A DNA stretch of 62,828 nt from contig NC_069006.1 of assembly GCF_001194135.2 (NCBI RefSeq), positions 23,142,764-23,205,591 on the forward strand, written 5' to 3'. The stretch's first letter is position 1; every line of letters begins with the position of its first letter. The stretch comes from Octopus bimaculoides (Eukaryota). Both the position numbers and the translations under genes were made by a program. The notes under the pieces were generated by a model, which saw nothing but the letters and a program-made list of their open reading frames with translations, was not told where the DNA came from and made no database searches. Below are positions 304 through 35,255 of the stretch, in pieces.

Positions 304-522
304 ATATATATATATAGCTGAAATGTTTCATCCACTTAACACATAAATATGTAATGGTATAATCTTTTTTTCTGCCTCTGACGAGATTCTACTTTATAAC
401 GATTTAATTATTACAATTAAAATCTTTGAAGTCAGAATCAAAACAGCTATTAGGGATTATGTTTGTATTTTGCAATTAATAAATATAATTATTAATTGAT
501 TAATCTCTATTTTCTCATATAC

Positions 523-583
<61 letters not shown>

Positions 584-883
584 TTGTTATATATAATGTA
601 TTATATATATTACATATGTACTTTTTTTCCATTCTCTATGACAATCATGCTTTGTAAAACTAAACCCTTTTAACCCAAACTTCTACCATTAATCCTTAAT
701 TCTAATTTCAAATCATAACCACAACCTTCAGTTTGATCCCTAATATATGCCTTCCTTCAGCATCCTCATAACCCTAATCCCGAATTCAGCTCCTGCAATC
801 TTTGGCAATAAATGTAATCAATAACTTTATATATATTTTTCTGTTTCTCTTCTCTTTTCCTTTTTTCCCCTCTTCTATTCTAG

Positions 884-1116
884 GTGAAGTTAAAGCAATC
901 ATCAGAACTTGTAGCGATGGAACATACCCTTTTAGTAAAAACATAACATATACAAACAAAACGGTTACACTGAATGGTTTGAGTGTAAGATTTTGCCAGG
1001 AGTCATTTTGTAATGGAATTTCTAGTGCCCAATGCTTGTTGCCAGATCATCTCTTCATGCCATTTCTTCTTTACATGATAACCACTTTGATCACTTCAGC
1101 TCTTAATACTAATTAA
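884..1116 (+). CDS. Terminal coding exon of Ly6/uPAR (three-finger, quiver/lynx-like) GPI-anchored protein, paralog 1. No upstream exons were found in the window, so they probably lie before it.
   Basis: Polypyrimidine tract ending TTCTAG/G at 883/884 (phase 1). Translates to (G)EVKAIIRTCSDGTYPFSKNITYTNKTVTLNGLSVRFCQESFCNG followed by a hydrophobic tail. CxxxxCN is the LU-domain terminal motif. Clearly paralogous to exon 7659-7930 (EVKAIIRTC vs QVQAIIRDC). Confidence 0.85.
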
Positions 1117-1441
1117 CAAACTTTTTAAACGATGACAAGAATCCCAGATGGGCTTCTGTCATCTTTTAGTAATATACACAATTAACCAATGCTAGCATGG
1201 GTTTCATGTATATTGTATATTGTTGTTGATGTATATATCATTGTTAGAAACCCTCAAACATTCAGATTATTGTCTCAAATGTAATGCTTCTTTATTTTGT
1301 AGCTTCAAGATTTACTCCGACACCCAATAATAGACAGTGCATTATCGAAATCTGTCAACCTCTGTTCTTCTCTGTCTGTTTTTTTCTTTTTATATCTCTC
1401 TATATCTCATTTTCCATGCCATAAATCTATCTCTATCTGCT

Positions 1442-1490
<49 letters not shown>

Positions 1491-1500
1491 TGTGCATAAA

Positions 1501-1733
1501 CGGCGGGGAGCTGGCAGAAACGTTAGCACGCCGGGCGAAATGCTTAGTGGTATTTCGTCTGCTGCTACATTCTGAGTTCAAATTCCGCCGAGGTCGACTT
1601 TGCCTTTCATCCTTTCGGGGTCGATTAAATAAGTACCAGTTACACACTGGGGTCGATATAATCGACTTAATCCGTTTGTCTGTCCTTGTTTGTCCCCTCT
1701 GTGTGTAGCCCCTTGTGGGTAGTAAAAAGAAAT
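1501..1733 (+). mobile_element. tRNA-derived SINE, abundant family A (near full length, low divergence)
   Basis: tRNA-like head (AGCTGGCAGAAACGTTAGC ... GAGTTCAAATTCC B box) and body GGGTCGAT..AAGTACCAGTT..CTGGGGTCGA. The same sequence recurs more than 10 times in the window. Confidence 0.85.
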
Positions 1734-3447
1734 AACACATGTGCATAAACACACACACAGTTCAATTTAGAAAAAATATTGTAATATTCTGTAAATATTG
1801 TAATATTCTGTTTAGTGTGAAACAATATTTAAAAAAGAAAAAAATGAACAAAATTTAGCCCCATTTTCCCCAGCAACACATTGGTGTTTGTTATAATCAA
1901 CTCAAGAAGGAGAAAATGCAAAGCTGACATTCACACAACTCAATTCAGAACATAAAACATCACAAATAGATGATACTGCCTGGGATTCACTTCTATTGCT
2001 CTATTATTTCTGTCAACTAACCACTAATTGCAAATTAATATTAACAGCTAATTCATTAATATTAAATACTCTGCCCTCTTCTTGACACAATTGATAAAAT
2101 GAGGAGGAGGTGAGAAAGAGAGGGTGTGGTGAGAACAAAATGACATTTGATCCTCAGGGGCAGTTTAAAGAAAATATTTTTTTTTCATTATTTTTTTTCA
2201 TGTTTGTTTTGTGACCCACACATTTTGAAATATCCAAGTTTCTTCTTGTGTAAATAAATAATAAAATGTAAGAAACAAAAAGTAGTAATTGAAACAATTT
2301 TGCTTGAGTTTAATTANNNNNNNNNNNNNNNNNNNNNNNNNNNNNNNNNNNNNNNNNNNNNNNNNNNNNNNNNNNNNNNNNNNNNNNNNNNNNNNNNNNN
2401 NNNNNNNNNNNNNNNNNNNNNNNNNNNNNNNNNNNNNNNNNNNNNNNNNNNNNNNNNNNNNNNNNNNNNNNNNNNNNNNNNNNNNNNNNNNNNNNNNNNN
2501 NNNNNNNNNNNNNNNNNNNNNNNNNNNNNNNNNNNNNNNNNNNNNNNNNNNNNNNNNNNNNNNNNNNNNNNNNNNNNNNNNNNNNNNNNNNNNNNNNNNN
2601 NNNNNNNNNNNNNNNNNNNNNNNNNNNNNNNNNNNNNNNNNNNNNNNNNNNNNNNNNNNNNNNNNNNNNNNNNNNNNNNATATAAACATATATTGAGTCA
2701 TAAAGAAAGTTATATACATTAGCAGTTGAATATGGTGTAGCAAGTTCTAGGATTTGAAACCCTTTTCCGAAATTACCAGTTGACTATCCTGAGTGATCTA
2801 CAATTGAGGAATGCATATGTCATGTGTATGTTCAATTTGTTGACCAATTGGTTTCCAGGAATTCCTGCCACCAGTCAGAACATCGCCCTAAGTGGCTTTG
2901 AGATTCGTGTCCTTTTCCTCTGGTTAAGCAGCTTAGTGCCAAACACTTTTGGCGCACACTGATTGCATTGTGTATTTTTTTTTTTGCCACGGTTAAGATA
3001 TAAACAAGAGTGAGAAAAGTGAAATAAAAAATCACAGCTTTGGAACAAAATACCTTGTGGTATTTGTCTTGCCTGAAATCTACAGACGATCCCTTGAGAC
3101 TCTCACCAACATCAAATGCAGTCAACCAGAGATTGATCCATGGGGAAACCCATGACTATCAACACAAACTGTGATAAAAATAAAACAATATTATCAGAAT
3201 TAAAAACAAATGAGTTGATCTTATTGTTGTTGCTACTGCTGCTGTTTTTCTTTTGTTGTTGTTGTGGTTGTTGTTGTTGCTGTTGTGGTTGTCATTGTTT
3301 TCGTTGTTTAGCTCCAACCAGTTGAAACTGAGCAGATCTCTTCCTGTCAGGAACATTCTGTTGTTTTTTTAAAAGAGACTGTACTATGATTTGACTTCTA
3401 TTTCTAGCAGATCGAGCAAACTCGTAAAGGGACCTTCAGATCGTTGT

Positions 3448-3935
3448 CATTATCTTGATGCTAATGCCATTATAACCAGATATGAAACCTGTTAACCTAA
3501 AACTTTATAAATGGAAAATAATACAACCCAAAACATACATAATGGATCCTAGCAACAATCTAAGACCAGTCTCTACTCACAGATACCACACTCAAGTCAC
3601 TAGGACCAGACTAGTTTCTTATCACAAAAACAAAACTGACAAAAAAAAACTTCTCTTTCGATAATGCTTGTTGCAAGAATCATGGGAATGCTATTATCTT
3701 AATGATGTCATTATTACCAGATATGAAACCTGTTAACCTGAAACTTTGTAAACAGAAAATAATACAATCCAAAACATAGATAATAGATCCTAGCAACAAC
3801 CTAAAACCATTCATTGCTCACAGAATACTACACTTAAGCAAAAGACTAAGATCAGTCACTAGGACCAGATTAGTGACTAATCACAAAAACAAAACTGATG
3901 GAAAAATTCATCTTTCCATAATGCATGCCACAAGA
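3448..3935. repeat. Tandem duplication, two diverged copies with a period of about 241 bp
   Basis: ATGAAACCTGTTAACCT at 3482 and 3723. Collinear similarity continues through CACAAAAACAAAACTGA. Confidence 0.85.
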
Positions 3936-4609
3936 AATTATTCCTAGCATCAAGTCAAGTAAAATCGTTGTAATCCATGCATACAAACTTCTTTACAAGT
4001 GTTGGGAATGTAAACACTTAATGAATATATTGCATGATTAAAAAATATACTAATATAAGGATTCCTATATACAGTAAATTATATAAAAAGACTTTATACA
4101 TTGTCAAAAAAATTAATTATAATTATAAATACTAAGAAAGGATATACAAATGTATAAAAATATCAAATATCAAATACAAAAAATTTCTAAAACAATATGT
4201 AATTTACAAATATAACAAAATATAATATTGTATTATACAGTGAGTTTTATGAAAAGAAATTATAAACTGCCAATCCCTTTATAAGCTATAGAAGTTACAC
4301 AAATGTATGAGAGAGTGTATAAATATATAAAGATTTAAAAATATAAAATATAAAAATTTTGTGAAATATTTTTTTTTACAAAGGTATTTAACTTCTTAGA
4401 GGCTACACCAAATGTGTGTATGTATGCATGTGTATGTGGTATGTGTGTTTATGTGTATGTGGTATATATGTGTGTGGATGTGTTTGTGTGTGTATGTGTG
4501 CATAGTTGTGTAGAGGTGGGAGAGTGGGAATGTGTAGTGGGGGAGGTGAATTTCTGGTCTCTTTCTCCTCACCAATGCTTGATAATCAGTGTTGGTTTGT
4601 TTACATCAC

Positions 4610-4760
4610 TGTAACTTAGCAATTTGGCAAAAGAGACTGATAGAATAAAACAAAAAATCAAGTTCTGGATTCAATTTCTTCAACTAAAAACCCTTCAAAT
4701 CAGTGCCCCAGCTTGGCCTCAGTCAAATAACTGAAACAAGCAACAACAAAAAAACAAGTG
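4610..4760 (+). mobile_element. SINE family B fragment (...GGCAAAAGAGACCGATAGAATAAGTAC...CAGCATGGCC..AATGACTGAAACAAG)
   Basis: Similar to 55200-55370 (+), 57914-58050 (-) and 10020-10115 (-). Confidence 0.6.
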
Positions 4761-5009
4761 ACAGATAAAACATGATATATCACTCTTACGCTATAGCTTT
4801 ATCTTCAGCTTTGTAATTATTATCCCATCATGATGATGATGATGATGATGATGATGACGACAGAGTACTTATCAATATTCAAACCTATTTCAAGTCACCA
4901 GCAGGCTCAGAGGGGGTGAGTACAATCAAATGAACAGTCAAGACTGTTGATAAGAAATAGACCTGATCCAAAGGTGAGAGGAACATAACATTTATGAGTT
5001 ACAGTAACA

Positions 5010-5052
5010 ATGGTTCCTGTTTGGTCTGTTCTCTTTACCTTTCTTCTAACAG
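5010..5052 (+). CDS. Ly6/uPAR paralog 2, exon 1 (signal peptide)
   Basis: ATG at 5010 encodes MVPVWSVLFTFLLT, followed by donor G/GTAACT at 5052/5053 (phase 1). Joins in frame to exon 2 to give the signal peptide MVPVWSVLFTFLLTVSTSNG-LSC. Confidence 0.85.
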
Positions 5053-5227
5053 GTAACTGTGAACTTTATTGCTTCTCTTCACAATTCAGTAATGTAATAC
5101 ATGTATATGTTCGTTAATTTCTCAATTACTCTCTTAAATATCTTTCTTAATTAAATGGATCCACATTTCTCTTCTATATTTCATTTTTTAAAATTTATTT
5201 TCATTGTAAACTAATAATAATGATAAT

Positions 5228-5345
5228 CCGTTCAACTCCAAGGGGATGGGAAAAGTCAATCAAGTTGACCCCAGTATTTTGACTGCTACGTAATTTATCG
5301 ACCCCAAAAGGATGAAAGGCAAAGTTGACCTTGGTGGAATTTGAT
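5228..5345 (-). mobile_element. SINE family A fragment in Ly6 intron 1
   Basis: Reverse complement of the 1501-1733 core (GACCCCAAAAGGATGAAAGGCAAAGTTGACCTTGGTGGAATTTGA). Confidence 0.7.
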
Positions 5346-6320
5346 TTATAATAAGTGAGTCAGTTTCTTGCTACTCAGAGTCTCACCTGTGTGTGACATC
5401 CTGACCCCAGGGCCATTAGAACTGAACGGACATCACTGAGAATTCCAAATTTAAACAAGGGAGAAATAGCTGTTCCTAATAAAACCAAAATATGAGATGG
5501 TCATGGGTGAAATGTTTAGGATCATCGATCTGCCCAAACAGCACAAACTCAGGGCTACCCAACAACAACAATGAATTATAATAACAGCTAAACTCAGATG
5601 TTTAACCCTCTTCTTTAAATAATACTGATGTTTAGCCCCAGGTAAACTCTGATCCAGTACACCAATGATCAAAGGCATTCTTGCCATGACCATCCTGTTT
5701 CTTGTGTCAAATTATATCATCTGTTTGATTTTTTTTTTTTTTTTGGTGGGGTTTTTGTAGTGAAGGTAGGATGAGAGTAATTTGGCTGCTATTTCTCACA
5801 GCTTCAAGAATGTTTTTCTCATCCCCCCCCCCATAATAGCACCATGTCACAAATAATTGTGTGTTGTTTAACCCTAGGTCTGTCCTATTCTAGCAGGATT
5901 ATAATCAAACATGTTCCAGTTGTGACCATTCCATTTGTTAGTAAGTCTGTCAGAAAGCATATTGCTTTGTGCAGCCTTCTTTCTTAGGTGATAAACAGAG
6001 TTCAATACAAAGATCTTTGGTGACTATTTCTAGCAGGTTTCCCACAGTTCCATGCATCATAAATATCTTCCTTGTTTTTCTGTTTTTGTTGTTGCTGGTG
6101 GTGTTGTTGTTGTTGTTGTTGCTGCTGCTGTTGTATAATTCTCCCATCAATTATTTCTTCAAACTCTATTCCTTCCACCTCCTACTTCTCCTGTTCCTCC
6201 CACTCCAGAACCTGGATAATATTTCTTATCAGTTAAGACCAGAAGCCATGAGAGCCAGTGCCTAATACTACATCAGGGCCTTATTATTATTATTTTTGTT
6301 CCTCTCAATTTTACTTTCAG

Positions 6321-6497
6321 TTTCAACCAGCAATGGTCTGTCCTGCTACAGTTGTGAAGGAAGCAAACCTTTTTCAGAATGTGAATCAGACATAAGGGAA
6401 TACCGATTGGGAATGGATTCAAAGTTTGCAGTAAACTGTTCAAAATATTCACACATGACAAAGCCATACTGTGCTATTGAAAGATACATGAAAAATG
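6321..6497 (+). CDS. Ly6/uPAR paralog 2, exon 2
   Basis: Acceptor TTTACTTTCAG at 6320 and donor ATG/GTAAGT at 6497/6498. Encodes STSNGLSCYSCEGSKPFSECESDIREYRLGMDSKFAVNCSKYSHMTKPYCAIERYMKN, with LU cysteines 1-5 and the typical LxCYxC start. Confidence 0.92.
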
Positions 6498-6714
6498 GTA
6501 AGTAAATCCATCAGTTTCTACCAAGATAGAGACACGAGTAAAATTAATAATAGAGAAATGAAAATAAAACTTTGGAAACAGCAAGGCAGCCATAACTTAT
6601 ATGGAAACTATGAGCATGCTTTCAAGGGAGATAATCAGAGAAAGACTTGAATGTCAACGTAAGATCATAATACTTCATGTAAAGTAAAATAAGTATAACA
6701 AATAATCCAGAATC

Positions 6715-6886
6715 CTTGTCCAGTATTGGATCAATTCCAAAATCTAATCAGTTCGTGCCAGTCACAAGACCAGACATCCCTGAAAGGTTCATCCATATCC
6801 ATCCAACGGTTCTTCAGATATCTTGTCCACGAACAAACAAACATGACTGAAAACAATATCTCCGCCTTTGCTAAGGCAGAGGTAAT
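6715..6886 (-). mobile_element. Non-autonomous element with a 5' hairpin (ATTACCTCTGCCTT-AGCA-AAGGCGGAG) and a GTTT microsatellite; possibly Helentron/DINE-1-like
   Basis: A hairpin next to the end followed by (GTTT)n is the architecture of HINE/DINE-type elements. The classification is an inference. Confidence 0.4.
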
Positions 6887-7658
6887 AATAATAATAATAA
6901 TAATAATAANNNNNNNNNNNNNNNNNNNNNNNNNNNNNNNNNNNNNNNNNNNNNNNNNNNNNNNNNNNNNNNNNNNNNNNNNNNNNNNNNNNNNNNNNNN
7001 NNNNNNNNNAATTTAAATGAAAATTCAATAAAAATTACTAAAAGTTAAATTTGAATTTTTAAAACAAATTTAATGAATTTTAACCAAATTTATCTATTTT
7101 TATTTTTACTTATTTTTATTTATTTTGAATTGATATTTTTTTTATTTTATGTTGAATGAAATTTTTCAACCAGTAACCCTTAAGTTTTAGCAACAAAACC
7201 TAACAGAAGTGAACTTAGCCAGCAAAATATATTGATTATTATTCTCCTTCATCATCATTTAATATTTAATCACCCTCGCTAATTTAACTCATAAAACATT
7301 TCTTATTTAATCATCCCTTTATGACTTAAACTAGTCTTCTCCAGCCCAAATACTTGTTTTATGTTCAAGCCAGCCAGATCCAGCCTCTCACTTATCCTAC
7401 AATGTCATTCTAAAAATAAACAATTACATCATTGAAATCTCAAAGCTATAAGATAATGCATGATTAATTAAAAACAATGTGAATAAAGAAACAATACATT
7501 TGACAGAGTAATAAGAATGCTACCAGGTTAAAAAAGGATTTATTTCCAATAAACTTAGATATGCAAAGATGTTACATGAAGGTTTCCTTCTTTTGGGTTT
7601 TGCAGTAAAAACTTAAGGTTTCCCTTCCTCTTCTCACAGTTGTTTATTTTCTCTTCAG

Positions 7659-7930
7659 GGCAAGTACAAGCTATTATTAGGGACTGTAATGATAAGATAT
7701 TCTCATTCTCCATGGAACATCCACCATACAAAAAACTTGAAACTGTTAATGGGGATTACAACATTTCCGTGTGCTCTTATGTTTCCTCTCAAGGAGCAAT
7801 ACTGTGCGTTTCATTGTGCGATGAAGACATGTGCAATGGCGTGTTTGGCAAATCAGATAGCATTACATTAAGCCTACCACTATTTGTCATATCATTACTT
7901 TCAGTGAAGGGACTCGCAAACTTCAGTTAA
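7659..7930 (+). CDS. Ly6/uPAR paralog 2, exon 3 (LU cysteines 6-10 and GPI signal). The full protein is 163 aa.
   Basis: Acceptor TTTTCTCTTCAG at 7658. Encodes QVQAIIRDCNDK...ISVCSYVSSQGAILCVSLCDEDMCNG, then a small-residue spacer and hydrophobic tail (LSLPLFVISLLSV). Exons sum to 43+177+272=492 nt in an open frame with 10 cysteines. Confidence 0.92.
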
Positions 7931-8174
7931 CTCTTTAATCATTGTCAGTCCTACCAGCCATGATTTCAATATCAGTTTACAGATGTTGTTTTCCACATTT
8001 TATTGGTTTCCATCAAGGGTATTTATTTAACTGACACCAGAAGGATTAACAGTAAAATCTATAGAATGGCAATGAAGAAGAAGAAAAAATACTAAACTAT
8101 TGTAAGCTTCATCACAAATTCAAATATTATCAAATAAAATAAAGCTACCATACTTTAAAGAAAGAAACAAAGAC

Positions 8175-8265
8175 TGGACAAAAGAATGGACAAAGAATGA
8201 ACAAAAAATGGACAAAGAATGGACAAAGAATGAACAAAAAATGGACAAAGAATGGACAAAGATTG
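8175..8265. repeat. 11-bp minisatellite (ATGGACAAAGA) with 33-bp higher-order periodicity, in the Ly6 3' region
   Basis: Directly visible in the sequence. Confidence 0.85.
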
Positions 8266-8845
8266 GATTGAAAGAATGGATGGAAAGAAGGAAGAAAGAC
8301 ACAAACAAATGAAGAGTTTTGTTTAGTTCAGTTTGTCATCACATTCATCCACAATATAAAGATAAAACAGAGTCATCTGGCTTTTCTACATTCAAAGGTC
8401 ACATCCTGTCAAGGTCAACTGTGCCCTTCCTCCTTTCCAGAACCTTTAAAATAAAGAATCAATAAAGTAACAGAGTCATTTTAATTGACTCTCTCTCACA
8501 CCTGCTGACAAAATTCCTGGTTTCATGCTTATGTTAGAAACAATTGGCAGAAGCATTAGCATTCTGGGCAAAATGCTTAGCAGCATTTCATCCGTTTTTA
8601 CATTCTGAGTTCAAATTCAATGTGCATATGGCTGACTACTCCACTGATGTGCATACCCTTAAGGTAGTTCACAGGAAGATTCAGTGTGACACAGAATGTA
8701 TCGAGACTGGTCCCTTTGAATTACAGATACAGTAAAGTGGAGTCATGTGAAATAAAGTGTCTTGTTCAAGGACACAATGTATTCCACTTTCTGCAAGCAT
8801 CAGTCGGTTCTTTTACTGAAAACCACTTGAACATTCTACTACTAG

Positions 8846-8880
<35 letters not shown>

Positions 8881-9774
8881 ACAATGAGGATTTTCAAAAC
8901 CTCTTATGGGGATATTTTTATCCAAGATACACTGGTTTAATATCAAATATTTTGAAGAGATATTTCTTCAATGAATATATTATATAAAATATCCATATAT
9001 ACATACATATGGGAAATGGTTCTTTGCATTGAGAACCACTTCCCATTGCCAACCGGTGGTTGTCACATGCTGATGGCAGGTCAATACCCAGAAACTCGGG
9101 TCTGTGTGTATCGGTGAGGCTGGAGATGGGAAAGATGACTTCCCTTTGCAAATACTGATAGAGCACAGAAAGTGTGTCAATAGCCAGTTGGAGGAAATGT
9201 CTCCCTGGGGCTACAAGCTACAGTAGCATCAACCCTTAAGAGTTAGCCACATTTAGGTGACAAATATACTTCACGATAAAGTACACCATTTTTCATGTTA
9301 GAACTATTTTACAACTTTTCAATCAGTTATCTCCCCTTCTTCAACTTAGCGTCTGTGACCTTTACCAATGTCTTTCATCCAGCTTCAAATTCTCATTTTT
9401 AATAAACTGATAAAAGAAATTAAAGGATTTGTTTCTTGATGGATTTCATTAAAAAAATTTTTTTGTTTGATACTTCGACTGATTCACGTCTTTATTTGCC
9501 CAAAGACATTCTCCAGGTAAGCCATGCATACATCCATGCAGACACACACACATGCATATATATACATGTACGTATGTGTACATAGATTTACACGTTACAT
9601 ACTTGTAAGTACACGTGTATAAAAGCATGTATGTATAACATATAATGAAATTTATTTTTAACCGGCAAACTTTATTTGCAACTAGGAAACACAGAGTGGT
9701 ATCAACAAAATAACTTTTATGACTTAGTCAAGTGAAGAGCAAAACCCAAGTATTTTCTTTTATTTACAGCCAAC

Positions 9775-9903
9775 ATGGGTGACAATAGTGATAGGGAAGC
9801 AAAGAGGTGGGTGGCACAGAATTATGTTGCTCCATTAAGAAGCAATGTATCAAGAATATTTAGCTCGACTGGACTCCACGAAAGGTGTTCAAGGGGGAGG
9901 TAA
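9775..9903 (+). CDS. Candidate small ORF (42 aa, MGDNSDREAKRWVAQNYVAPLRSNVSRIFSSTGLHERCSRGR) in a putative spliced transcript
   Basis: Upstream consensus donor CAG/GTAAGC (9516/9517), acceptor TTTTCTTTTATTTACAG at 9769, and Kozak-like CCAACATGG. No homology recognised. Confidence 0.35.
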   Translation: MGDNSDREAKRWVAQNYVAPLRSNVSRIFSSTGLHERCSRGR

Positions 9904-10301
9904 TAGGTTTAACTCTAATGCCCTTTTAAAATAGGTGCTCTCCCTTAGATTAGCTTTTTTAAATTTACAATCTGCTCGGTATCACCTTCAGGTTTTGAAC
10001 TGATCCATGCTACCTGCCTTTTTCTTGTGTTTCAGTCATTGGACTACGGCCATGCTGGGGCACCGCCTTGAAATATTTAGACGAACAAATAGATCCCGGT
10101 ACTTATCTTTTTAAGTTTGGAATTGTGCGCCGGAAAGTCCGTATCAATTGCTGATTCAGTGAATTTACGGAATTTACCGAATGCCGTCGCCTTCGGGTAG
10201 AAAACGAAAGATTGCCCTACCACGCTACAAGTGAAAGAATCACACTAATATTTATTTATATTTAATTTACACCTTTAACTTTGAAGGCTTCATACAACAG
10301 C

Positions 10302-12600: not shown

Positions 12601-13059
12601 ATGCAAAAATCTGGTGTTTGGAATATAAATTAACATGAAAGTTTGATCATAGAACCAAAGCAAAACTCAGGCAGGTTAAAGTAATTAACACAACACAATC
12701 AATAAATAATCTTTTAATTAATTATGAAACTGCTGGAGTTACAAGGATAAATTGTTGGGTTTTTAAAAAAAAAAAATGGGGACTGGGTAAATAGCAGGAA
12801 AAGGGGAATATAACAGTAGATGAAAAGAGTTTTTCATCAAGAGACTGAAACGAGGTGACGGCTGAATGTCATTTGTCAAAGAAGTTTTCATTGCCTCCAA
12901 TATTCTCCAACACAAAATAATGTTGTCCAGTGAATAGTTTTGTGAACCTTCAACACTTTGCTACAACCTCTCCATCATGTACCTAAATTCTTTGTTTTAA
13001 GAAACAAATCGTTTCTGAAACCATGAATAATAAAAACAGTCATAACAATAATAATAATA

Positions 13060-14040
13060 ATTTCAAATTTTGGTACAAAGGCCACCTATTCAGGGGAGCG
13101 GGGTAAGTTGATTGCATTGACCCCAGTATCCAACTGGTACTTATTTTATCCACCCCAAAAAAGGATGAGAGGTTAAGTGAACTTTGGCAGAATTTGAACT
13201 CAGAACATAGACATGAAATGCTGTTTAACATTTTGCCCAGCATGCTAACTATTCTGCCAGCTCGCCACCCTAACAATAATAATAATAATAATAATCCTTT
13301 CTACTATAGGCACAAGACCTGGATTTTGTCAGGAGGGAGGACAGTCAATCACATCGACCCTCAGGACTCAATGGGTACTCAATTTATCAACCCTGAAAAG
13401 ATGAAAGGCTAAGTCAACCTCAGTGGAATTTGAACTCAGAATGTAAAGACAGACAAAAAAACCATTAAGCATTTCACCCAGCATGCTAACGATTCTGCCA
13501 GCTCACCACCTTAATAAAAACTCTCATTTTGGCACATTGCAGCCTGTTGCTGCATTCACCTTTTGTCTGCATATTCCTGGGTCTTCTCAAGCAACTCCTA
13601 GTGCAGTCTTCATCCCTGTGAGATATTTTCTCATCTGCCATTTTGCCTGTCTTGATGTTTTCAGTTCACATTCCACTAAGGTTAACTTTGCCTTTAATCT
13701 TTTTGAGGTCGATAAAATAGGTACCAGTCGAGTACTGGGGTCAATGTAATTGATTTATCCCCTCCCCCAATTCCAGGCATTGTGCCTATAGTAGAAAAAA
13801 GATTATTATTATTATGGTGGCAAGCTGGTAGAATCGTTACTGTGTTGGACAAAATGCTAAGCAGTATTTCTTCCAACTTTACATTCTGAGTTCAAATATT
13901 GCTGAGATTTACTTTGGGGTCCTGTCTTTTTTGAGGTCAATAAAATAAGCACCAGTGGAGCAGTGGGGGTCAATATAATTGGCTTATCTCTCCCTTCAAA
14001 ATTTTCATGCCTTATGCCCGTTGTAGTACAAAGAATTATT
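13060..14040. mobile_element. Cluster of four family A SINEs (two on -, about 13060-13262 and 13290-13505; two on +, about 13680-13805 and 13818-14040)
   Basis: Each matches the 1501-1733 element or its reverse complement. Confidence 0.8.
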
Positions 14041-17000
14041 ATTATCTCTTAACCAGGAACCATGGAATATGAACTTTGCATGGAAGATGATGAGGATGCG
14101 ATGTTCATACTTTTCCCTGTAAGGGAACAATACATGCAAAATAAATTATTAAAAATTCCAGCTAAGAATCAAAGCAACCACATTGATAGACATGACCTCA
14201 GTTTTCTAAATTTAAATTAAATAAAATTAATAAGAATAATAATTTTTTATTTTATTTTTTAAACCAAAAATATAATCTTTTCTTAATGAATCATTTGAAC
14301 CAAAGAAAAAAATATTGAGAACAGAAAAAATGCAGAGGGAAAGGGAGTTTGAAGAACCTCAAATACATATGAATAAATAAAAATATTAGCTTACTGAGCA
14401 ATGAAACATTATTACAACTGTATGTGATGTTAAGACCGACAGCACCCACTTTCATCTGCTAGAAATAGCAACCAAATTCCCTCAAGTCACATCCAACTAT
14501 CTTAAAACAGAAAGAATGTGTTATATACAATATAGTCCCTAAAATACCTTTTATCATATCCCCGCCTGATCAAAATCCAGGGACCCCCACTTCTTTTCTC
14601 TCTCTTTACACTTGTTGTTGCTGTTGAGTCTCCAAGTTGGCCCCTTTTTGAGAAGACCTATAATCAAAGGCATTCTAGCCATGACCATCCCATCTCATTC
14701 AAGAATAGAACATTTCAAATTATGAACTGTCATTTTCTAAAAATGTAGGGTATGTTTGAGGTAAATTTGACTTATTTCTAGCAGATCTAGACATCATGTA
14801 GAATTTCTTTCACTGGTTTACTCTTCACTTCTGAGAAAGGGTTGAAACAAAAAAGAAACAGACCAATTTAGAGTGACTAGCCCAATTGTAGCCATTACTA
14901 CCTTAGCCCTTATTTCCCCCTCTGTGTCTAGGTGTAGGCCTCTTTTAGAGGGGTTAACACATTTCATGTAAAGATTTTGCATAAACCTCTCTTCTAATTG
15001 CTCCCTTGAGTGTTATAAAGCTATACATAAGCATTGTGCATATTAAACGAGCTTGTTAACTTCCCCACTCCCCTCCCCCCAAAAAAGGGGTAACACAGTG
15101 ACCTTCTCTCTTCCCAGCTTTCCTGAATTCAGGATGGATACAGGGAGCTCACAATTAGAATTTAACAACATACATAATAAACAGTTGGATAATTTAAGTA
15201 GAAAAGCTGTACGGGGGATGGTGGCAGTGGTGGGATAACGCAATGGAGGTGGAGTGTGTTAAGTGTGATGTGGTGTAATGGGAGTATTATGTAACAGAGG
15301 TGTAGTGTTGTGGCAGTGGTATGGTGTGGTGCAGGTATAGTGTTGTGTAACGGTAGCTGTAGTGTAATATGATAGTAGTAGTAGTAGTATGGGAGTATGT
15401 GCTGTAACAGAGAATTGTAGCATCCGCCATTTGTTAGTGGTTCCCTATTCTTGGTAGATGACGCCTTTACACCACTCAGCTGACATCCCTCCAATGCATG
15501 GGTCTGTTTGAGTAGTCGTTGCTGGTGAGGGTCCAGTTGTAGGGTAATGTGATGCTGGCAGTTGCAGTGTGTGTTGTAAGTGTAGTAGTAGTAGTAGTGT
15601 TGTGAGATGCAGAAATAAACATGACTTTCTCCTGCTAAAAATAATCAGAAACCAAATAAACAGATTCGTACCCAAAAACAGTCATAAAAAAAAAAAAACA
15701 GAAAAAGAGAGAGAATTCAATTAACAAAGAAACTCTTAAAATGAATGTTAAATCTAAACAAATGTAATAAATAAATATCAAGAAGTAAAAAGAAAAAGCA
15801 AAATTATTGAATTACCTCTCAAAAGAAAATATCAGAGCAGGAAACAAATTTGTAAAAACAATGATGGGGGAAAAAAGAAAAAATACAAAAAAAGAAAATG
15901 GACACAAAGATAAGTAGGGTATGTGATATAGTCACTGGTTGAGAGAGTGTGACTCGTCTCACTTGCAATGTCTTCTTATCTCAGCATTTAGAAACAAACC
16001 AAACAAGAAGCAAAAAAAGAACCCCTTTGTTTTTACCTCCCAATCACAGACTAGAGGGGTAATTAACACTTTAACTGCAAAATATAATTTCATATATATA
16101 TTGTTTTGCAAGATTCTTGATGTAAAAATGTGTGGCAAAAGATGATTACCCCCAAATGTAACAATAATTTCATGCTTATTCCAGAAATGTTAAATATCTA
16201 CCAAAAAATAGAATTGATATTTTCTGCAAGTCACATTGCCTTGATAAACTTGACATCTCTCAACAGAAAATAGTTCCAACAGGTTGGAATATACAATTCC
16301 TTTCCACAGTTAAGCGTTGTGAAATTTCCGCAGCAGCAAAAGAGTTTACAGTTGCTATTACCAGGATGTTTTTGCAAATGAATTCAAAGACCAAGTATTC
16401 AGTGGTACAACAGTGCGAAGTTATAGTCATTGTGCTGATTGTTTTGTTTGTTTATTTGTTTAGTATTGTTTACAATTGTTTTTGCTGTTGTATTTGTTTC
16501 TTTCCTCCATGTTCTATATATTTCCAGTCATGTTTGAAACTCTTTCCCTTTACTTTTTTATAATTTTTCACCAAAGAAACCCCGCATTATCAACAATTTT
16601 GACAAAATTAATTAACATAGGTGCCACATGTTATCACATGTGAACTAGTCCAAAATAATTATTGGCCACAACACATACTTTGTAGGGGCCAAAGTGGCTG
16701 TCATCTTTCTTGTTTTCATTCAGAAATTAAAGGAACACATTGCAAAAAAAAAAAGGGAGACTTCCAATTGGTATGTGTGCACATTCATTCATGCAAATAC
16801 ATGCATATATAAGGGTGCAGGTATTCAAACACACATACACAAACATATAGCCACACATATACATGCATATGTACACAAGTATGCATCTATATGTGTATAT
16901 CACTCTCTTATATTCATTTTTCCACTCAAGGAAATGTTGGACTTTTCCTCCAGCAAATTGTCAAACATGAGAAAATAGCTGTAAAATCACACACACACAT

Positions 17001-22400: not shown

Positions 22401-25400
22401 ATTAAAACAAACTGAAGTCAGAGAAAGACAAGCATCATCATCATCATCATCATTGCAAAGAGCACCTGTGCCAGTACCACATGAAGAGCATCCGTGCCAT
22501 GCCACATGATAGAGGAACTGTGCCAAAGCCATGTTAAAATGCATCCATGCAAGCGCCACATAAAAACACCCAGTACACTCTGTAAAGAGGTTGGCTTTAG
22601 GAAGGGCATCATGCCAAAATAGATGACTGGGGCTTGGTGTAGCCCTCTGGTTTGCCAGCTCCTGACCTGGGGCTAAACAACAACATAAGAAATGTAAGTA
22701 AATAAATGACATCTCACACCTTCTGGGTAAAAACAAGTAAACAAGAGAAGCCCTTTACCTCTAGTTGCTCCAGTATGACTGGATTGCGGTCCTGATTGTC
22801 GGAGAGGTTCCGTTGCAAGCGCTCAATTTGAGCGTTCAGTGTTTGGTTAACATGCTGCACATTCTGAAGACTAGACTGCACCTGAGACAGCTCTTCCTTC
22901 TTTCGCTGCAGTTCATCTGCAGTTGCATCACATTGCAATGCTTTCTGCTCAAAGCTCCCCTGTAATTGCTCCTGTTCAGTTGCCAGAGCTTTCTGTTGCC
23001 GCTTCAAGTTTTTGTTTTCTTTAATTTTCACACCAATCTGCAATGAAGAAACAGATATGTTTCAATAGATACATCCATGTAGATACATCGTGTCGTTTTT
23101 CATGTTTTTTTCGTAATGTAAAAGCTGTAAAATACATCCAAATATCTTTTACAGAGTGCAAACATTTAACCTAGAATTGACATATGTAGAGTTGATAGAT
23201 ATATTTATTATACCATACAGACACTGCAACAATCAGGCAAATTGATATCAAAAAGGATAAGAATCTGGGAAACTATAAGAAAAATTTAATCCAATAGTAG
23301 GTTTTTGATTCCAAGAAAGACCATTCTTGCTAAGCCTGCACATATGATTTGTTTCTAGTGATCACCACCCCCTCCATCAAATCAACATGGCCTATACAGG
23401 TGCATGGTGTGCCACACATCAGGTGTCAAAGCGATTGTAGAGCATCATCATCATCATCATCAATGAAATTAAGTGATGAACCACTCAGTCCAGCATTTGA
23501 GCTCACAAACTCGCATAACACCCTAACCACTAGGCTATGTGCCCTCATAATAAAAACAACAGAAAAAAAACCAAAAGACCGACCTGTTTCCTGAGCTCTC
23601 TCTGGTTACTCTTTTCATGAGCCAGCATCTGTTCAAGTTCCTGTAACCTGTTGCTGAAATCAGAATCGTTACAATCTTGGTTCTTCAGCGTTTCGCTGAA
23701 CTGGGTCTGTAGTTCGACCAGTGACGACTCACGACGAGCCAGAGCTTCTTCTAACTCAGCCACATGGTTCTTCAGAGTTGTATTGCTTTGTTGTAAACCT
23801 TCAGAGGTAAAAAAAAAATATATATATATATATATANNNNNNNNNNNNNNNNNNNNNNNNNNNNNNNNNNNNNNNNNNNNNNNNNNNNNNNNNNNNNNNN
23901 NNNNNNNNNNNNNNNNNNNNNNNNNNNNNNNNNNNNNNNNNNNNNNNNNNNNNNNNNNNNNNNNNNNNNNNNNNNNNNNNNNNNNNNNNNNNNNNNNNNN
24001 NNNNNNNNNNNNNNNNNNNNNNNNNNNNNNNNNNNNNNNNNNNNNNNNNNNNNNNNNNNNNNNNNNNNNNNNNNNNNNNNNNNNNNNNNNNNNNNNNNNN
24101 NNNNNNNNNNNNNNNNNNNNNNNNNNNNNNNNNNNNNNNNNNNNNNNNNNNNNNNNNNNNNNNNNNNNNNNNNNNNNNNNNNNNNNNNNNNNNNNNNNNN
24201 NNNNNNNNNNNNNNNNNNNNNNNNNNNNNNNNNNNNNNNNNNNATGATAATAATAATAATAATGATAATAATGATAATAATGATAATAATAATAATAATG
24301 ATAATAATGATAATAATGATAATAATGATAATAATAATAATGATAATCCTTTCTAATATAGGAACAAGGCCTAAGATTCTTTTGAAGGGTGCTAATCAAT
24401 TACACAGGCCTTAATTGGTACTTGTTTTATCAACCCCAAAAGGATGAAAGACAAAGTCGACCTCGGTGGAATTTGAACTCAGAAATAAGGAGAAAAAAAT
24501 AATAATATTATCACAATAATTGGTCTTCATCTTCAAAGTTAGAAATACTTTGGCTCCCTACCCCAGCCCAACATCTACTAACCCCCTACAAAGCTGAGGT
24601 GCAACCCTCATTGGAACATTGCTCCCACATCTGAGATTGGGCTGCTATTGTCTCTGATTGCGATAAAGCCACTCACCAACACACTCCATACAGTCTTTTA
24701 TGAAAAGTGGGTCACATGAGACATTGCCCATTCTCAAGTGGCCAGTGATGTAGAACAACATCTGACAGTCTGGTTGATCATGGGATAACTAAAACTAGTT
24801 ATAAAAGTACAGAAATTTTAGGGAAAAGTTCCACCCCAGGGCTCCTGACCTGTAAGGCGACCTCGTTCTTTTTCAAGTTCCAGCTGGAATTGGTAATCTT
24901 TGGAACTGGCTTCCCGCTCCACTTCTTCTTTCTCGTTGACCAATTGCTGTAGCTGCTCTCCCATGACCACAACCTGTGCTACATATTGGTCAATCTGTTG
25001 TTTGGTTGCTATTTCCAGTTCTGTTAATTGACTTTCAGCTTGATGTTTCTGGCTGGTTACCAATTCTAATTCTCCAGCAAGAGTCTGAAATTGAGAAGTC
25101 TTATGTTAGAACAAATTCATTTATTTATATATATATATAGCAGTCTGTTAAAGTCTGTCATACCGGCCATGACGAAGGGAAATAGCCCTGAAACTCGAGT
25201 CGCCTTTATATATTTATATATTTGATCCTTTATATTGAACACTCAATATTTCATCTACATTCAATACTTTCTTTCACGGTGCCATCCATTTTTATTTTAT
25301 TTTATATTATATATTGTATATTATATTATATATTGTATATTCCATATTCTATATCGCACATTGGTTCTGCAGGAATATAAATAAAACATAAAAAATAGAC

Positions 25401-25490
25401 AGTGTTGGAACTCTTTTAAACAAAATAATATATTCCTCTATACACAATCATACAAAAAAACCCACCTTTTTTGTATTTATTTTTACTCGC

Positions 25491-25524
<34 letters not shown>

Positions 25525-28500
25525 TGTAGATAAGGTTTTCTTTAAGCAAAGGCTAAGAGTGAGGTAATTCTGAAAGAAACCCCACATAAGATATGACCCT
25601 CTAACAGTGACTCACAGGACCCACTGGCAGTTGGAAGTTCTCCAATGTCCAGCAATGAGACCCCTTTAATAAGTTAAATGATAAACTTCAATGGTTGGAC
25701 ATTGTACCAATAACCCTACACTGTAAAAGACAGACAGAATAGATTTTTTAAAAATCACAGAAGTATGAAATAGTCGTTATCTTACCTGTAACTCTACCTT
25801 CATGTGATCTTGTTGCTCCAACATACCAAATTCAAACTTCCGTTTAAGCATATCATGTTCGTTCTGAAGTGCTTCTTTGCTGGAAACCATCTCGCGGAGT
25901 TTACTACTGAGAAGTTCAGTGTTGCTGTCATAAGCCTTTTGTCTTTCCATCAATTCATCTTTCACAGCATTTAAATCAGTACTAAGTCTTGCTGACCGAG
26001 CTTTCTGTTTGGTCAAGTTGTTTTGCCATTTCTTTTCAATAGATTTCATCTCTGCTTTCAGGGTTTTGTTCTCAGTCTCAAGCTGTAGAAGTTTCTCAGA
26101 ATTTTCTAGATTTTGCTCTTCACTTGATGGTCTCTCTTTCTCCTTTTCTAATTCAACATTTACAAGATCAAGATTCTTCTGGACATTTTCTAGAAGGTTC
26201 TGTACGGCTTCCTTCTCATGAACTTCATGTAAATACCGGTCATTCAATTCTGTAAACTGCCCTCGAAGATCATTTAAGTCCTTGGTAAGAGCTTCATTCT
26301 TCTTCTCAATCTTCTGAGAATGTTCAACCAGATTCTCTTTGTCTTCCTGAAGTTCTTTCTCAGGCAAATTAGACAGTGTTTTCTGAGATTCTTCCAATTC
26401 CAACTTGATCCTATCTCTGTCCACTTTCACTTGTTCAAGTTCGGCAACACGATTATTCAGCTCCTGCTTCATTTGCCAAAAGCTTTTCTCTACTTTACTC
26501 AAGTCACCACGAAGTGTTTCCAAGGAAGAATCAAAAATTTTCTTTTCTTCAGAAGCTGCTACCAAAGATATTTCCACTGCAGCCTTCTCTTCTTTCAACT
26601 TCAACACTTCCTGGTTCTTCCGACTGACTTCTGTTTGGAAAGCACTCAAAGAAGATTCAACATCAATGAGTTTCTGCTGTAATTCCTCACTGATTTTATC
26701 CTGGTGAAACGAAAAAGAGATAAAAAAAAAAAATAATAATAATAAACTGGTAATTATAATGATTACTGTCAAAGAAAATTATGTTTGAAAATGTATGATG
26801 TGTCACTTCATATATGTATACGTATTACTCTGTGTATGTGAGTATGATTCAGTGTGTGTGTGAGTATGTGCACTCAGTTCTGTTTCTATGTATGTCCAGA
26901 TGTGCAGACATGGGTATATGTAAATTTAGTAGTCAGGTATCCTACTTCTGGATAAATATCTCGTGACTTACTGGATTCAAATTAGGAATCATTACTGCTA
27001 GACTACAATTTTACAACAGAAAAATACGCTCCCAAATTAGACAACAAATTTTTTTTTAAACTAATTCATGCATTTATTTGAATTTGTAAAACTTTCCAAC
27101 CCATATGGATAGGAGATAATGAAATTTTTAAAAAGTCATAATTAAAAGAAAAAAAGAGCAAATTAAAAAGAAATCTAAGTATCCTACCTTTTCAGTGAGT
27201 TTTCCTTCAGTAACCATCAGATTTTTCATCAGACTTGCCTGCTCAGTTTCTAAAGAAAATATTTGAATCTGCTTTTTCTTCACGTTGTTTTGTGATTTCT
27301 CAAGTTGAGCCTCTAGGTCAACTGTTGTCTGCAACAAGGTGGCTATCTTTGACTTCTCTTCCTCGACACTCAAAATTTTCGAATCAAATGTCTCTTCAAT
27401 GAGATGCCTCTCTCTCTGGATCTCCTGGAAAGCTGTTTCTCTCTCCAACATGTCTGCCTGAATGTTTTCCAGTTGTCGAGCGAGTGTCTCTTTCTCTAAC
27501 ACTGCCTTCTGCCGCGTCTCAGACAACAACTGGTGCAGGCGTGCAGTATCTGCTTTCAAGCGTTCGCTGATTATTCCCTGAGATGAGACTTGTGCATGCA
27601 GTGCAGTTAACTCCTTTTGCAGTTCTGAACGAACCTTGTTGGCCATCTGGAGTTGTTCGTGGTACCACTGCTTTGTGCTGGTAATGGCTGACAGGTCACT
27701 TTTTGCATTCCGTGCATAAGTGTCAGACAGCATCTTTTTCTGAAGTGCAGTCTGCACCTCAACATAAAGTTCAGCAACTTTATTTTTTAAAGCTTGAATG
27801 GTCACGTCACGGGCATTAAGACTGTCCGACAATTCTCGTACATTTATGTTTTGCTTGTCCTGAAGCTCCTGGGTCAGCTTCAATTCCTCTTCATGATGTT
27901 TAGCAGCATCAATCTTTTCTTCGAGCAGTTTCTGAGTATCCTCTAGACATTGTTCCAAGTAGACACGGTTCTCTTTCAAGCTCTTGATGTCGGCTTTCAG
28001 TGCATTCTGTTTCACGTCAGACTCCGAATTATTGAACAATTGCAGTTTCTGATCCAGAGAGGCAACTTGAGCCTGTAACTCCGCACGTTCTTGTAATGCA
28101 ATTTCTGCCTCTGCACTCAACACTTCCAACTGACCCTCCAGTTTTGCCTTCTCCTTCAGAACAGTATTTAGGTTCGTTTCTTCCGGTTTCCCTGTTGCTG
28201 GAGAAGATACCTCGACATAGGCCTGAAGAGAGAGAGAGAGAAAGAAAAGGATGGAGAAAGAACAACCAAAATGAGACTAAATACGTTTATATATAATATA
28301 TCTTGGCTGACACAAAGCTACGCTGATACAGAGAAAAGGTACATCAAATCTGTCTAAAATAATTCTTATATATATATNNNNNNNNNNGGATTTGTGTCAA
28401 CATAGTGCAATAGAGTGTTCCCCCTGAAGAATTGTAGTGGATCTGCATCCAATCACACTATGAACACCTGAACACCCAATGCAGAGGATGCAAAAAGCCA

Positions 28501-33184: not shown

Positions 33185-34997
33185 TCTGTTTCAACACACT
33201 GTTTCACATCAGGAATCTTGCAACACAAATTCACAAACATAAAATATATAAAATGGAAAGAAAAACAAAGGAACTTTAATATGGCTCTTCAAAGAGCAGC
33301 CTGTTTCCCTCATATCACATATCACCATCTTAAAAATATACCCTAAAAATAAAGACAAGATGGTCAGGGCTTGTATGCCTTTGATCAATATGCAAAATAA
33401 CCCTTAGCTTGTCTTCAAGCAAGGTAATATTTCCCCAGGATCAGACATGTTTTTGAAGATTGGAAATGAATGGCATTCATTTACAACAATCACACAACAC
33501 CAAAACAACACACACATATTTTGCAGTCTCTGTCTACCAAATCCACTCACAAGGCTTTGGTCAGCCCAAAGCTATAGAAGAATACACTTGCCCAAGGTGT
33601 CATGCAGTGAGATTGACTCAGATCAATGTAGTTGGGAAGTACATTTCTTAACCACATCAAAAATAAGGTAACGAAAAACGTTAAGAATGAAACTGAGGGT
33701 GACACAACTAAATAAAAATGTCTTGAATGTGCTGCACTGTTGTCACTGTAATTCAATGACTGAGTGAAGTTGAAAATAAAATAAATGTAATAGCATAAAA
33801 AAAACAAAGAACTAATCTAAAGATAGACTGAACTACGATACATGACTTCCATGACACATAATAGAAAAGTAAGTATTAAACAGATTCTTGTTTCAAGTAA
33901 CGAGCTTTGTTATTCCGATTACGGCTGAATTGTCAACACAGGTTTACATATGGAAACAAAGTGAGAAAACATAAACAAGAAACATGGATAAAATAAATGG
34001 ATTTAAACTGTGAGAAGAGAACAGTTCACACACTATTGTTAGAGGCATAACACTATTTGTAGTTTGGTGTTTATAGTTTGTTTGGTTTATGCCCATTTTT
34101 CCATGCTAGCATGGGTTAGACTTGTGTTTCTCAAAGTGGGATGTGTGTCGATACAGATGGAGGTGGGGGTGGAGGGACTTCAGAATAGCACCAAAGTAAC
34201 AACTGAATAAAACTAGCAATAGAATTTTTATCAAAACTCCTTTTGAATATATATATATATTTCAAAGCAGGAGTTAAAAAAAAAGCCCATTATGTGTGTA
34301 TACATACATATATACTTATGTTTGTAAGTATGTATATGCATATTTGTGTGTGTTTGTGTGACAGGAAAGGGAGAGTTGAAAGAAAAAAGAGATTGAGAGA
34401 AATCTCCAAAGCAAATAGAATGAGGCAACAACTATGAGAGAGAGAGAGAGAACAAGAAGCAAATGGAAGCAGATAAAACTCTGAGACATTATCTCGCTTT
34501 CGCTCTCTCCTCCACCACTTGGAACCGATCCAATTTCCTACTGTTAATTAAGTCAATGAAAACCAGTATTTTGGTACAGTACCAAGTCGGTACTAAGTTA
34601 GTAGAGCAATTAATAATTTATGCTGGTGTAGTAGGTGTGATGGAAGTAGTGACATAGTAGTGGTGGCGGTGGCACAGGTGTGGTGATGGTGGTGATGGCG
34701 CTTTTGGTGTTGGTATGGTTTAGTAACACCCAACACCAGACAAGCATGTTTCCTGCCAGTCCAGATGTTCCCGTCCATACCAAAGCCTTCTGTTTGTTTT
34801 GCCGACACATTCTCCATCCATTGCTAGTTTTCCATGCTTGTCACGACTTCACCGTCTTACTCATTTCTGCTAGCTGGGTGAATGAGAGCAATGTGAAATG
34901 AAATGTCATGCCAACCCATAAGGGACGGTTTCCTGGTTCCATGGCATATAAATTCCCCACCAGGACAGGACGCTGTTCCATCACAGGGTTACTCAAT

Positions 34998-35207: not shown

Positions 35208-35208
35208 T

Positions 35209-35255
<47 letters not shown>

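Follow-up and report, generated by a model that had tools for sequence, protein, structure and literature searches.

End of a tandem quiver-type Ly6 gene array with alternative terminal exons in Octopus bimaculoides

Genes at the array end

The DNA described in this article is a stretch of 62,828 nucleotides of Octopus bimaculoides (RefSeq assembly GCF_001194135.2, contig NC_069006.1, positions 23,142,764 to 23,205,591 of the forward strand), and this whole stretch is referred to as the window. It is eukaryotic in character and rich in repeats, with microsatellites and elements resembling short interspersed nuclear elements (SINEs). The window holds the distal end of a same-strand tandem array of quiver-type Ly6 genes. 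Two members of this array reach into it: one complete gene, named beta, and a single terminal exon, named e3D, of the preceding gene alpha. Coordinates are compiled in Table 1, in which e1 stands for a signal-peptide exon, e2 for the exon with cysteines 1–5, and e3 for a terminal exon.

The start codon of gene beta lies in a good Kozak context (aacaATGg) and is preceded by in-frame stop codons. Both introns are in phase 1, and their acceptors end in cag after tracts of 80-95% pyrimidine. The spliced coding sequence has a length of 492 nt, is in frame, and encodes a protein of 163 residues. This protein contains 10 cysteines at positions 23, 26, 35, 54, 65, 83, 112, 123, 127, and 132 as well as N-x-S/T sequons at N53 and N108. 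According to hydropathy, strong hydrophobicity is confined to residues 1-17 and 141-159, and the tail of 30 residues past the Cys-Asn motif has one charged residue (K157) in its last 15. The earlier note, made from the letters of the window alone, had described a three-exon gene with phase-1 introns at 5010/6321/7659, whose product has a signal peptide, 10 cysteines, and a GPI tail. The exon structure is borne out by the splice sites, the in-frame coding sequence, and the models of O. sinensis; the 10 cysteines recur in the spliced product, and its two termini are hydrophobic. The observation of a complete gene beta hence stands.

The best match of the 163-residue product is isoform X1 of O. 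sinensis LOC118760862, which is also 163 residues long, is 88% identical over the full length, and is built from the same three exons. Exon 1 is likewise present in O. sinensis (in two copies) and in O. vulgaris. In O. bimaculoides itself, the UniProt entry A0A0L8G515 (“Protein quiver,” 75 residues) is 100% identical to exons 1 and 2 spliced at 5052/6321, after which it reads Gly-Lys and a stop codon out of intron 2 and is, thus, a truncated model. The gene model of 163 residues improves on the deposited annotation of this species, which consists of the 75-residue truncation and read-through models only. Upstream of the gene, at a distance of 17 nt from its start codon, lies a further, out-of-frame ATG (4993-5009). 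O. sinensis shares this ATG, which has a weak context and possibly opens a short upstream reading frame.

Two assembly gaps lie in the region, one intergenic (2317-2679) and one inside intron 2 (6910-7009). The gene model is unaffected by both since no codon spans either of them, their flanks (1793-2315 and 2955-4005; 6506-6909 and 7010-7241) are collinear and in the same orientation with N-free sequence of O. sinensis, and a search of the O. sinensis stretches matching the two gaps returned no Ly6 exon. The counterpart of the intron-2 gap in O. sinensis measures 231 bp.

The upstream exon e3D encodes Cys6, Cys9, and Cys10-Asn, followed by a hydrophobic tail. It is without Cys7 and Cys8 and, therefore, has three domain cysteines instead of five; to the last exon of gene beta, it is 29-34% identical. 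The preceding exons of gene alpha (e1, e2a, and e3C) fall beyond the 5' end of the window. Orthologues of e3D are found in O. sinensis (locus L002, 28167-28394) and O. vulgaris (locus L014, 27087-27314) with 89% amino acid identity. Herein, the comparison with the orthologue gives no insertions or deletions (indels), a nucleotide identity of 94%, and a ratio of nonsynonymous to synonymous substitution rates (dN/dS) of 0.83. Rather than simply a truncated paralog, the segment 884-1116 represents the second alternative among the terminal exons of gene alpha upstream. Of the two same-strand paralogs reported in the earlier note, one of them complete, the second copy is thus real, but it comprises a terminal exon only and belongs to the gene upstream. 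Gene alpha probably makes use of e3D because its open reading frame (ORF) and acceptor are conserved in three species and because it resembles an expressed exon of the cuttlefish Sepia, named y. A homology search with the 77-residue e3D peptide alone returned no candidates. Forms with eight cysteines, devoid of Cys7-Cys8, occur in two separate array members, namely, in the gene QVR-0 of O. sinensis (locus L013, 1361-1522) and at 884-1116 of the window. Since two members are without this pair, the disulfide of finger 3 seems to be dispensable in the array family.

The array can be appreciated as a whole in O. sinensis, where three overlapping loci merge to 125 kb of gap-free sequence with five genes on the same strand, in the order QVR-0, alpha', beta', alpha, and beta. 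Positions 410-10124 of the window are collinear with the end of alpha and with beta of this species. O. vulgaris, in which the array is partly mapped, shows the same layout of alpha and beta. The head of the O. bimaculoides array lies on CM046626.1 and consists of QVR-0 followed by e1, e2a, and e3C of alpha', with order and strand unchanged; in this species, too, the array is partly mapped. A six-frame search of the remaining 55 kb of the window gave no third copy. The suggestion that this is the end of a Ly6 array has, hence, been confirmed, with the array mapped whole in O. sinensis and in part in O. vulgaris and O. bimaculoides.

Two further observations concern the duplicated copies. In O. 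sinensis, the e3A exon of the syntenic gene beta (L002, 42910-43179) is 79% identical in amino acids to the window exon, and that of beta' (L001, 34970-35239) is 88% identical, which represents an asymmetry after duplication. On CM046626.1 of O. bimaculoides, a second partial e3C-like copy follows directly after an assembly gap (L019, 19126-19389 and 19893-20081) and may be a local duplication or an artefact.

Compared with O. sinensis, the 725 bp of exon sequence contain no indel, against 9.5 expected from the rate of the flanking non-coding sequence (P = 7.5e-5), and the cysteines are all conserved. Substitution identity amounts to 92.1% in alignable non-coding sequence, to 93-94% in e1, e2, and e3D, and to 88.6% in e3A. 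The dN/dS ratio is 0.18-0.36 for e2 (vs. the O. sinensis copies) and 0.57-0.84 for e3A. The scaffold and the reading frame are constrained, and the loops of the second half evolve at about neutral speed.

Table 1. Features of the window and genes of the O. sinensis array. Positions refer to the window.
Feature	Position	Strand	Description
Terminal exon e3D of upstream gene (unit alpha)	884..1116	+	Phase-1 acceptor 883/884, 77 codons, stop 1114-1116
Gene beta, exon 1	5010..5052	+	ATG and signal peptide (MVPVWSVLFTFLLT), donor CAG/GTAACT, phase 1
Gene beta, exon 2	6321..6497	+	End of signal peptide, Cys1-5, N53 sequon; phase 1-1; donor ATG/GTAAGT
Gene beta, intron 2	6498..7658	+	Holds 100-N assembly gap 6910-7009
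Gene beta, terminal exon e3A	7659..7930	+	Cys6-10, C-N motif, 30-residue GPI-signal-like tail, stop 7928-7930
AATAAA poly(A) signal	8133..8138	+	203 nt past gene beta stop; sequence motif only
Relic of second terminal exon e3B of gene beta	8781..8819	+	Last 11 codons only, old stop mutated
Coiled-coil gene, exons	22717-23061, 24821-25105, 25780-26778, 27131-28276, 28461-29519, 30024-30494	-	Weak generic coiled-coil Pfam matches only
O. sinensis QVR-0			LOC115224715; 156 residues; first in array
O. sinensis unit alpha'			LOC115224798; e1 (MSAQ...), e2a, e3C; second
O. sinensis unit beta'			LOC118760862; e1 (MVPA...), e2, e3A, e3B; third
O. sinensis unit alpha			e1, e2a, e3C, e3D; fourth
O. sinensis unit beta			e1, e2b, e3A, e3B; fifth

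Family assignment and predicted fold

The hallmarks of Ly6/uPAR (LU) genes are three exons, phase-1 introns, a glycosylphosphatidylinositol (GPI) signal in exon 3, 10 cysteines, and a clustered arrangement (PMC6600238). The exon layout of gene beta had been called typical of Ly6/three-finger toxin genes, and it indeed matches this definition. On the level of sequence profiles, the Pfam family QVR (PF17064) aligns with residues 21-133 of the gene beta protein over the full length of the profile (1-86 of 86) with an E-value of 6.4e-5 and 24.3 bits. The same profile is matched at E ≤ 0.01 by all eight clean cephalopod members, with no competing family, and by 30 of 67 wider relatives (best E-value, 1.2e-6); the QVR-0 protein at the array head of O. 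bimaculoides carries an unmarked precomputed QVR match. The LU-type N-terminal pattern L-x-C-x-x-C is present with L21, C23, and C26, and the pair C132-N133 shows little or no variation among the 67 relatives. Cys8 and Cys9 are three residues apart and not adjacent, which is a deviation from the LU 10-Cys pattern.

A profile search of 1.84 billion representatives yielded 126 relatives, seven of them at E < 1e-30 and the others in a continuum from 1e-19. The named ones among the seven are cephalopod (Octopus, Sepia, and Argonauta), with no gastropod or bivalve among them. Gastropod and bivalve relatives follow at E-values of 1e-19 to 1e-15 and stem from Lottia, Haliotis, Pomacea, Gigantopelta, Bulinus, Potamilus, Crassostrea, and Argopecten; several of these have been named “Protein quiver” or “Protein sleepless” automatically. 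By these matches, the family is mollusc-wide and not cephalopod-specific. The description of the array as lineage-specific, therefore, applies to the alpha/beta subfamily only and does not extend to the family, for which the gastropod and bivalve relatives are clear.

The fold was predicted with AlphaFold2 for the O. sinensis protein P0001, which is 88% identical to the window product, from an alignment of 67 sequences. The mean predicted local distance difference test (pLDDT) value of the model is 90.0, with 91-97 in the domain. Herein, exon 2 accounts for finger 1 and the first strand of finger 2, and e3A accounts for the second strand of finger 2 and for finger 3. A structure prediction from an eight-sequence cephalopod alignment was discarded (pLDDT, 43.8). 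Comparison of the model with the PDB by Foldseek mainly returned three-finger/LU structures. Probabilities were 0.94-1.00 for the ectodomain of the transforming growth factor beta (TGF-beta) type II receptor (TbRII), GPIHBP1, PSCA, Lynx1, and Lynx2 and 0.30-0.84 for TEX101, C4.4A, uPAR, and CD177, with 0.51-0.84 for the first three of the latter group. The target-normalised template modelling score was 0.47-0.70 among the five structures from TbRII to Lynx2, and unrelated chains appeared from rank 29. A sequence-profile search of the PDB gave nothing meaningful, with a chance match to a ribosomal protein at an E-value of 1.3. The QVR profile, the fold matches, the gene layout, and the clustering together support the conclusion that gene beta is an LU gene of quiver type, which lies at the margin of what the Pfam model covers and has unusually long loops in a domain of ∼113 residues.

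Alternative terminal exons and comparison with known systems

The building plan of the array units comprises one signal-peptide exon, one exon with Cys1-5, and up to two alternative exons that each encode Cys6-10 plus the tail. All e3-type exons come with a phase-1 acceptor of their own, Cys6-10 (in e3D, Cys6, 9, and 10), a hydrophobic tail, and a stop codon of their own. In O. sinensis, two terminal exons are present in three of the four mapped alpha/beta units. For one of them, LOC118760862, both products are annotated in RefSeq as X1 (with e3A, 163 residues) and X2 (with e3B, 160 residues), which are identical over 74 residues and then diverge. In the cuttlefish Sepia esculenta, two types of RNA-seq contigs of ∼1 kb, P0009 and P0011, are identical over 247 nt of 5' untranslated region and over nucleotides 1-232 of the coding sequence, and they split from nucleotide 233, exactly at the phase-1 junction of exons 2 and 3. 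P0009 is found in 10 and P0011 in nine independent contigs; two of the source runs are RNA-seq of Sepia esculenta from whole larvae or juveniles (PRJNA844162; PMC10141105, PMC9538352). Because these transcripts diverge at the exon 2/3 junction, the exon-swap design is expressed in a decapodiform, and it is annotated in octopods. Across the terminal exons of octopus and cuttlefish, the tail extends 25-33 residues past Cys-Asn with a hydrophobic end, and five of six tails are uncharged in the last 15 residues, the exception being e3A with K157.

In the AlphaFold2 model, the middle finger is formed by the hairpin 64-72/75-84, and the swap junction falls at its tip, between N73 and G74. With the junction in this place, exchange of the terminal exon would bring in a new anchor signal and a new finger 3 along with one of the two strands of finger 2. 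Loop 2 of the Drosophila protein SLEEPLESS (SSS) is needed for binding to Shaker and to the nicotinic acetylcholine receptor (nAChR) (PMC4735452), and the octopus junction is predicted to lie at the tip of this same loop. In a neighbour-joining tree of terminal-exon peptides, which are short and give an unsupported tree, e3D groups with the Sepia exon y and e3A with the Sepia exon x. This grouping hints that the exon pair may predate the split of octopus and cuttlefish. A search for pairs with identical N termini and different C termini outside cephalopods found none in a library clustered at 50% identity, which is not evidence of absence. Literature searches on Ly6 in cephalopods and on alternative terminal exons in quiver returned no relevant paper, and a description of the half-domain swap was not found in the searchable literature.

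In this assembly, gene beta of the window has lost its own second terminal exon and, hence, can make only one product. What remains of e3B are its last codons (8781-8813), which read IPLSASISRFF compared with IPLSASISWFF in the intact beta' copy of O. bimaculoides; the old stop codon has turned into a Tyr codon, which is followed by TGA, and the exon body, the acceptor, and all cysteines are gone. By blastn, re-verified by direct alignment, the relic corresponds to the 3' end of e3B in O. sinensis (114658-114754 in merged coordinates), and homology of the 3' flank runs to 8993. In O. sinensis, e3B sits 7 kb past e3A. In the window, 258 bp with a SINE fragment among them stand in place of the exon body. 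As there are no Ns at this site, either the exon was truly deleted or the assembly has collapsed here.

Among the closest known systems are the Drosophila proteins QUIVER and SLEEPLESS; QVR is the only Pfam family matched and is matched over the full model length. Common to both sides are the signal peptide, the LU domain with 10 cysteines, the terminal Cys-Asn with a GPI-type hydrophobic tail behind it, and a site for N-glycosylation within the first half. O. bimaculoides fragments are labelled “Protein quiver” in UniProt. The octopus proteins differ from them by a score under the Pfam cutoff, by a longer domain with long loops, and by two alternative second half-domains.

In mammals, LYNX1 and SLURP2 share 5' exons. 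LYNX1/SLURP2 is listed as one locus that gives two LU proteins, and the mammalian Ly6/uPAR clusters (8q24, with LYNX1/SLURP2, LY6E, PSCA, and GPIHBP1) resemble the octopus array by their three exons, phase-1 introns, GPI signal in the last exon, and duplication-born tandem arrangement (PMC6600238). They also have the three-finger fold in common, as reflected in the Foldseek matches to Lynx1, Lynx2, PSCA, and GPIHBP1. However, the Pfam family UPAR_LY6 (PF00021) is not matched by the octopus protein, Cys8 and Cys9 are adjacent in the mammalian proteins, and the cephalopod swap concerns the second half of one domain and not a whole domain.

Two other features of the window may be noted. A multi-exon gene with long coiled-coil ORF exons, unrelated to the array, occupies about 22717-30494 on the minus strand. 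A SINE-like repeat of ∼170-240 bp is present in many copies, among them 1496-1734, about 8545-8618, 13022-14045, 24275-24504, 34994-35258, and 41879-42192, and the O. sinensis loci contain it dozens of times. At gathering thresholds, the repeat matches nothing in Rfam, and an Rfam scan of the whole window at these thresholds gave no RNA family.

Competing explanations and proposed function

With respect to identity and architecture, the region can be read with considerable confidence as the place where a tandem array of quiver-type LU genes with alternative terminal exons ends. Several points weigh against this reading. The QVR score of 24.3 bits is below the gathering cutoff of 27.3, and UPAR_LY6 reaches 10.2 bits against a cutoff of 24.8. 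The search with these two profiles that the earlier note had proposed for the spliced protein has, thus, given a full-length but subthreshold match for QVR and a negative outcome for UPAR_LY6. The Foldseek E-values are modest (3e-3 to 0.1), and the model represents a close relative and not the window product. The exact product of 163 residues was not found in the protein collection, in which the 75-residue truncation is the sole deposited model of gene beta; for O. bimaculoides, the 6497/7659 junction is, hence, a predicted one. No clean transcript with e3D was found, and the sole deposited model containing e3D is a chimeric prediction (P0005). Outside the cysteines and the reading frame, constraint is weak, because the exons change at about the non-coding rate (92%), e3A is lower at 88.6%, and dN/dS is 0.6-0.84 in e3A and e3D.

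The last of these points would also be expected if gene beta were a decaying or nonfunctional copy that has lost one terminal exon and drifts neutrally. The 39-bp relic of e3B, a substitution identity of the exons no higher than that of non-coding sequence, the high dN/dS of e3A, and the truncation of the only deposited model all agree with such decay. We nevertheless consider it improbable since the ORF is intact, all splice sites and the 10 cysteines are kept, the absence of indels and the dN/dS of e2 speak for selection on the scaffold, and the gene has a good Kozak context and an AATAAA past its stop codon. Fast-evolving loops are, moreover, usual in three-finger proteins. Somewhat less improbable, yet still unlikely, is that alpha and beta form one complex transcription unit, from which read-through proteins of 226/223 residues (1.5 LU domains with 15 cysteines) or mutually exclusive choices of exon 2 arise. 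RefSeq joins e1 and e2a of alpha to e2b and e3A or e3B of beta in O. sinensis (X1 and X2; L002, 10001-50168), as it does in O. bimaculoides XP_014784093.1, and any combination of the internal exons is in frame as all of them are in phase 1-1. A precedent for read-through in a Ly6 cluster is the tandem chimerism of Ly6g5b and Csnk2b-Ly6g5b transcripts, which concerns a mammalian locus with other partner genes (PMC3626593). Against this stands that beta has its own conserved exon with ATG and signal peptide in three species, at which one deposited model starts, that an odd half-domain with 15 cysteines presumably cannot form the LU disulfide set, and that the supporting models are computational. 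The 226/223-residue models may be annotation artefacts or real tandem chimeras.

The two other alternatives concern the nature of the product. Snake three-finger toxins share with the octopus proteins the fold, the arrangement in gene arrays, and the rapid evolution of loops, which would fit secreted toxin-like or defence proteins, such as salivary three-finger toxins, in place of membrane-anchored modulators. Secreted three-finger toxins have no such C-terminal extension as the one of 25-33 residues with a hydrophobic end that all octopus and cuttlefish terminal exons keep. The octopus proteins thus retain a predicted C-terminal anchor signal and 10 (or eight) cysteines in the Ly6 pattern, their nearest named relatives are of quiver/sleepless type, and the Sepia transcripts stem from whole larvae or juveniles and not from a venom gland; a toxin is, therefore, very improbable. 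The domain could also be read as an ectodomain resembling TGF-beta/activin type II receptors and serving as a GPI-linked ligand trap, given that the top 13 Foldseek matches are TbRII ectodomains (E-values, 3e-3 to 3e-2) and that these are as long as the octopus domain. TbRII, however, shares the three-finger superfold, so that its ranking probably results from loop length. With a sequence identity of 13-17%, a profile match to QVR only, a gene structure and C-terminal Cys-Asn of LU type, and no transmembrane-kinase part, we give this explanation hardly any weight.

For the quiver-type LU protein encoded by gene beta, the following course is proposed. Exon 1 and the start of exon 2 would provide a cleavable signal peptide, by which the protein enters the endoplasmic reticulum. 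There, it would form five disulfides and be N-glycosylated at N53 and N108, and its tail would be exchanged for a GPI anchor; both the anchoring and the glycosylation are predicted from the sequence. On the outer membrane leaflet, the mature protein would represent a small binding module that acts on neighbouring membrane proteins, in the way that Lynx proteins of mammals and QVR/SSS of Drosophila act on K+ channels and nAChRs or, alternatively, that other members of the QVR family act in septate junctions. The binding surface may be diversified in two ways, namely, by tandem duplication of the alpha-beta pair and by the choice of alternative terminal exons. By the latter, the first half-domain would stay as it is, and the anchor signal, the whole of finger 3, and half of finger 2 would be exchanged.

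By analogy with these relatives, the most likely function is that of a surface module on a GPI anchor, which binds membrane proteins in its neighbourhood and tunes them. A specific role as modulator of ion channels or nAChRs is a tentative extension of this analogy and would have to be called doubtful, and a link to nicotinic-type or chemotactile receptors is speculation. In the searchable literature, no link between Ly6 proteins and the chemotactile receptors of octopus was found, nor anything on Ly6 in cephalopods, and no receptor gene was noticed near the array. The most far-reaching picture would be a combinatorial repertoire of GPI-anchored three-finger proteins in coleoids, in which constant first and alternative second half-domains, possibly with cross-unit splicing, retune the middle and third fingers cell by cell, and which serves the expanded nicotinic-type receptors, including the chemotactile ones, as accessory subunits. 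We regard this picture as quite improbable in its entirety.

LU/Ly6 genes with this exon layout and in clusters are common in many animals, and in that sense the locus is an ordinary one. The point of most interest within this otherwise ordinary family is the half-domain swap via alternative terminal exons. Should different cells indeed make the two isoforms, a surface modulator could be diversified compactly in this manner, without duplication of the whole gene. The genes of the array, moreover, constitute a concrete set of candidates for accessory proteins of the cephalopod nicotinic-type receptors.

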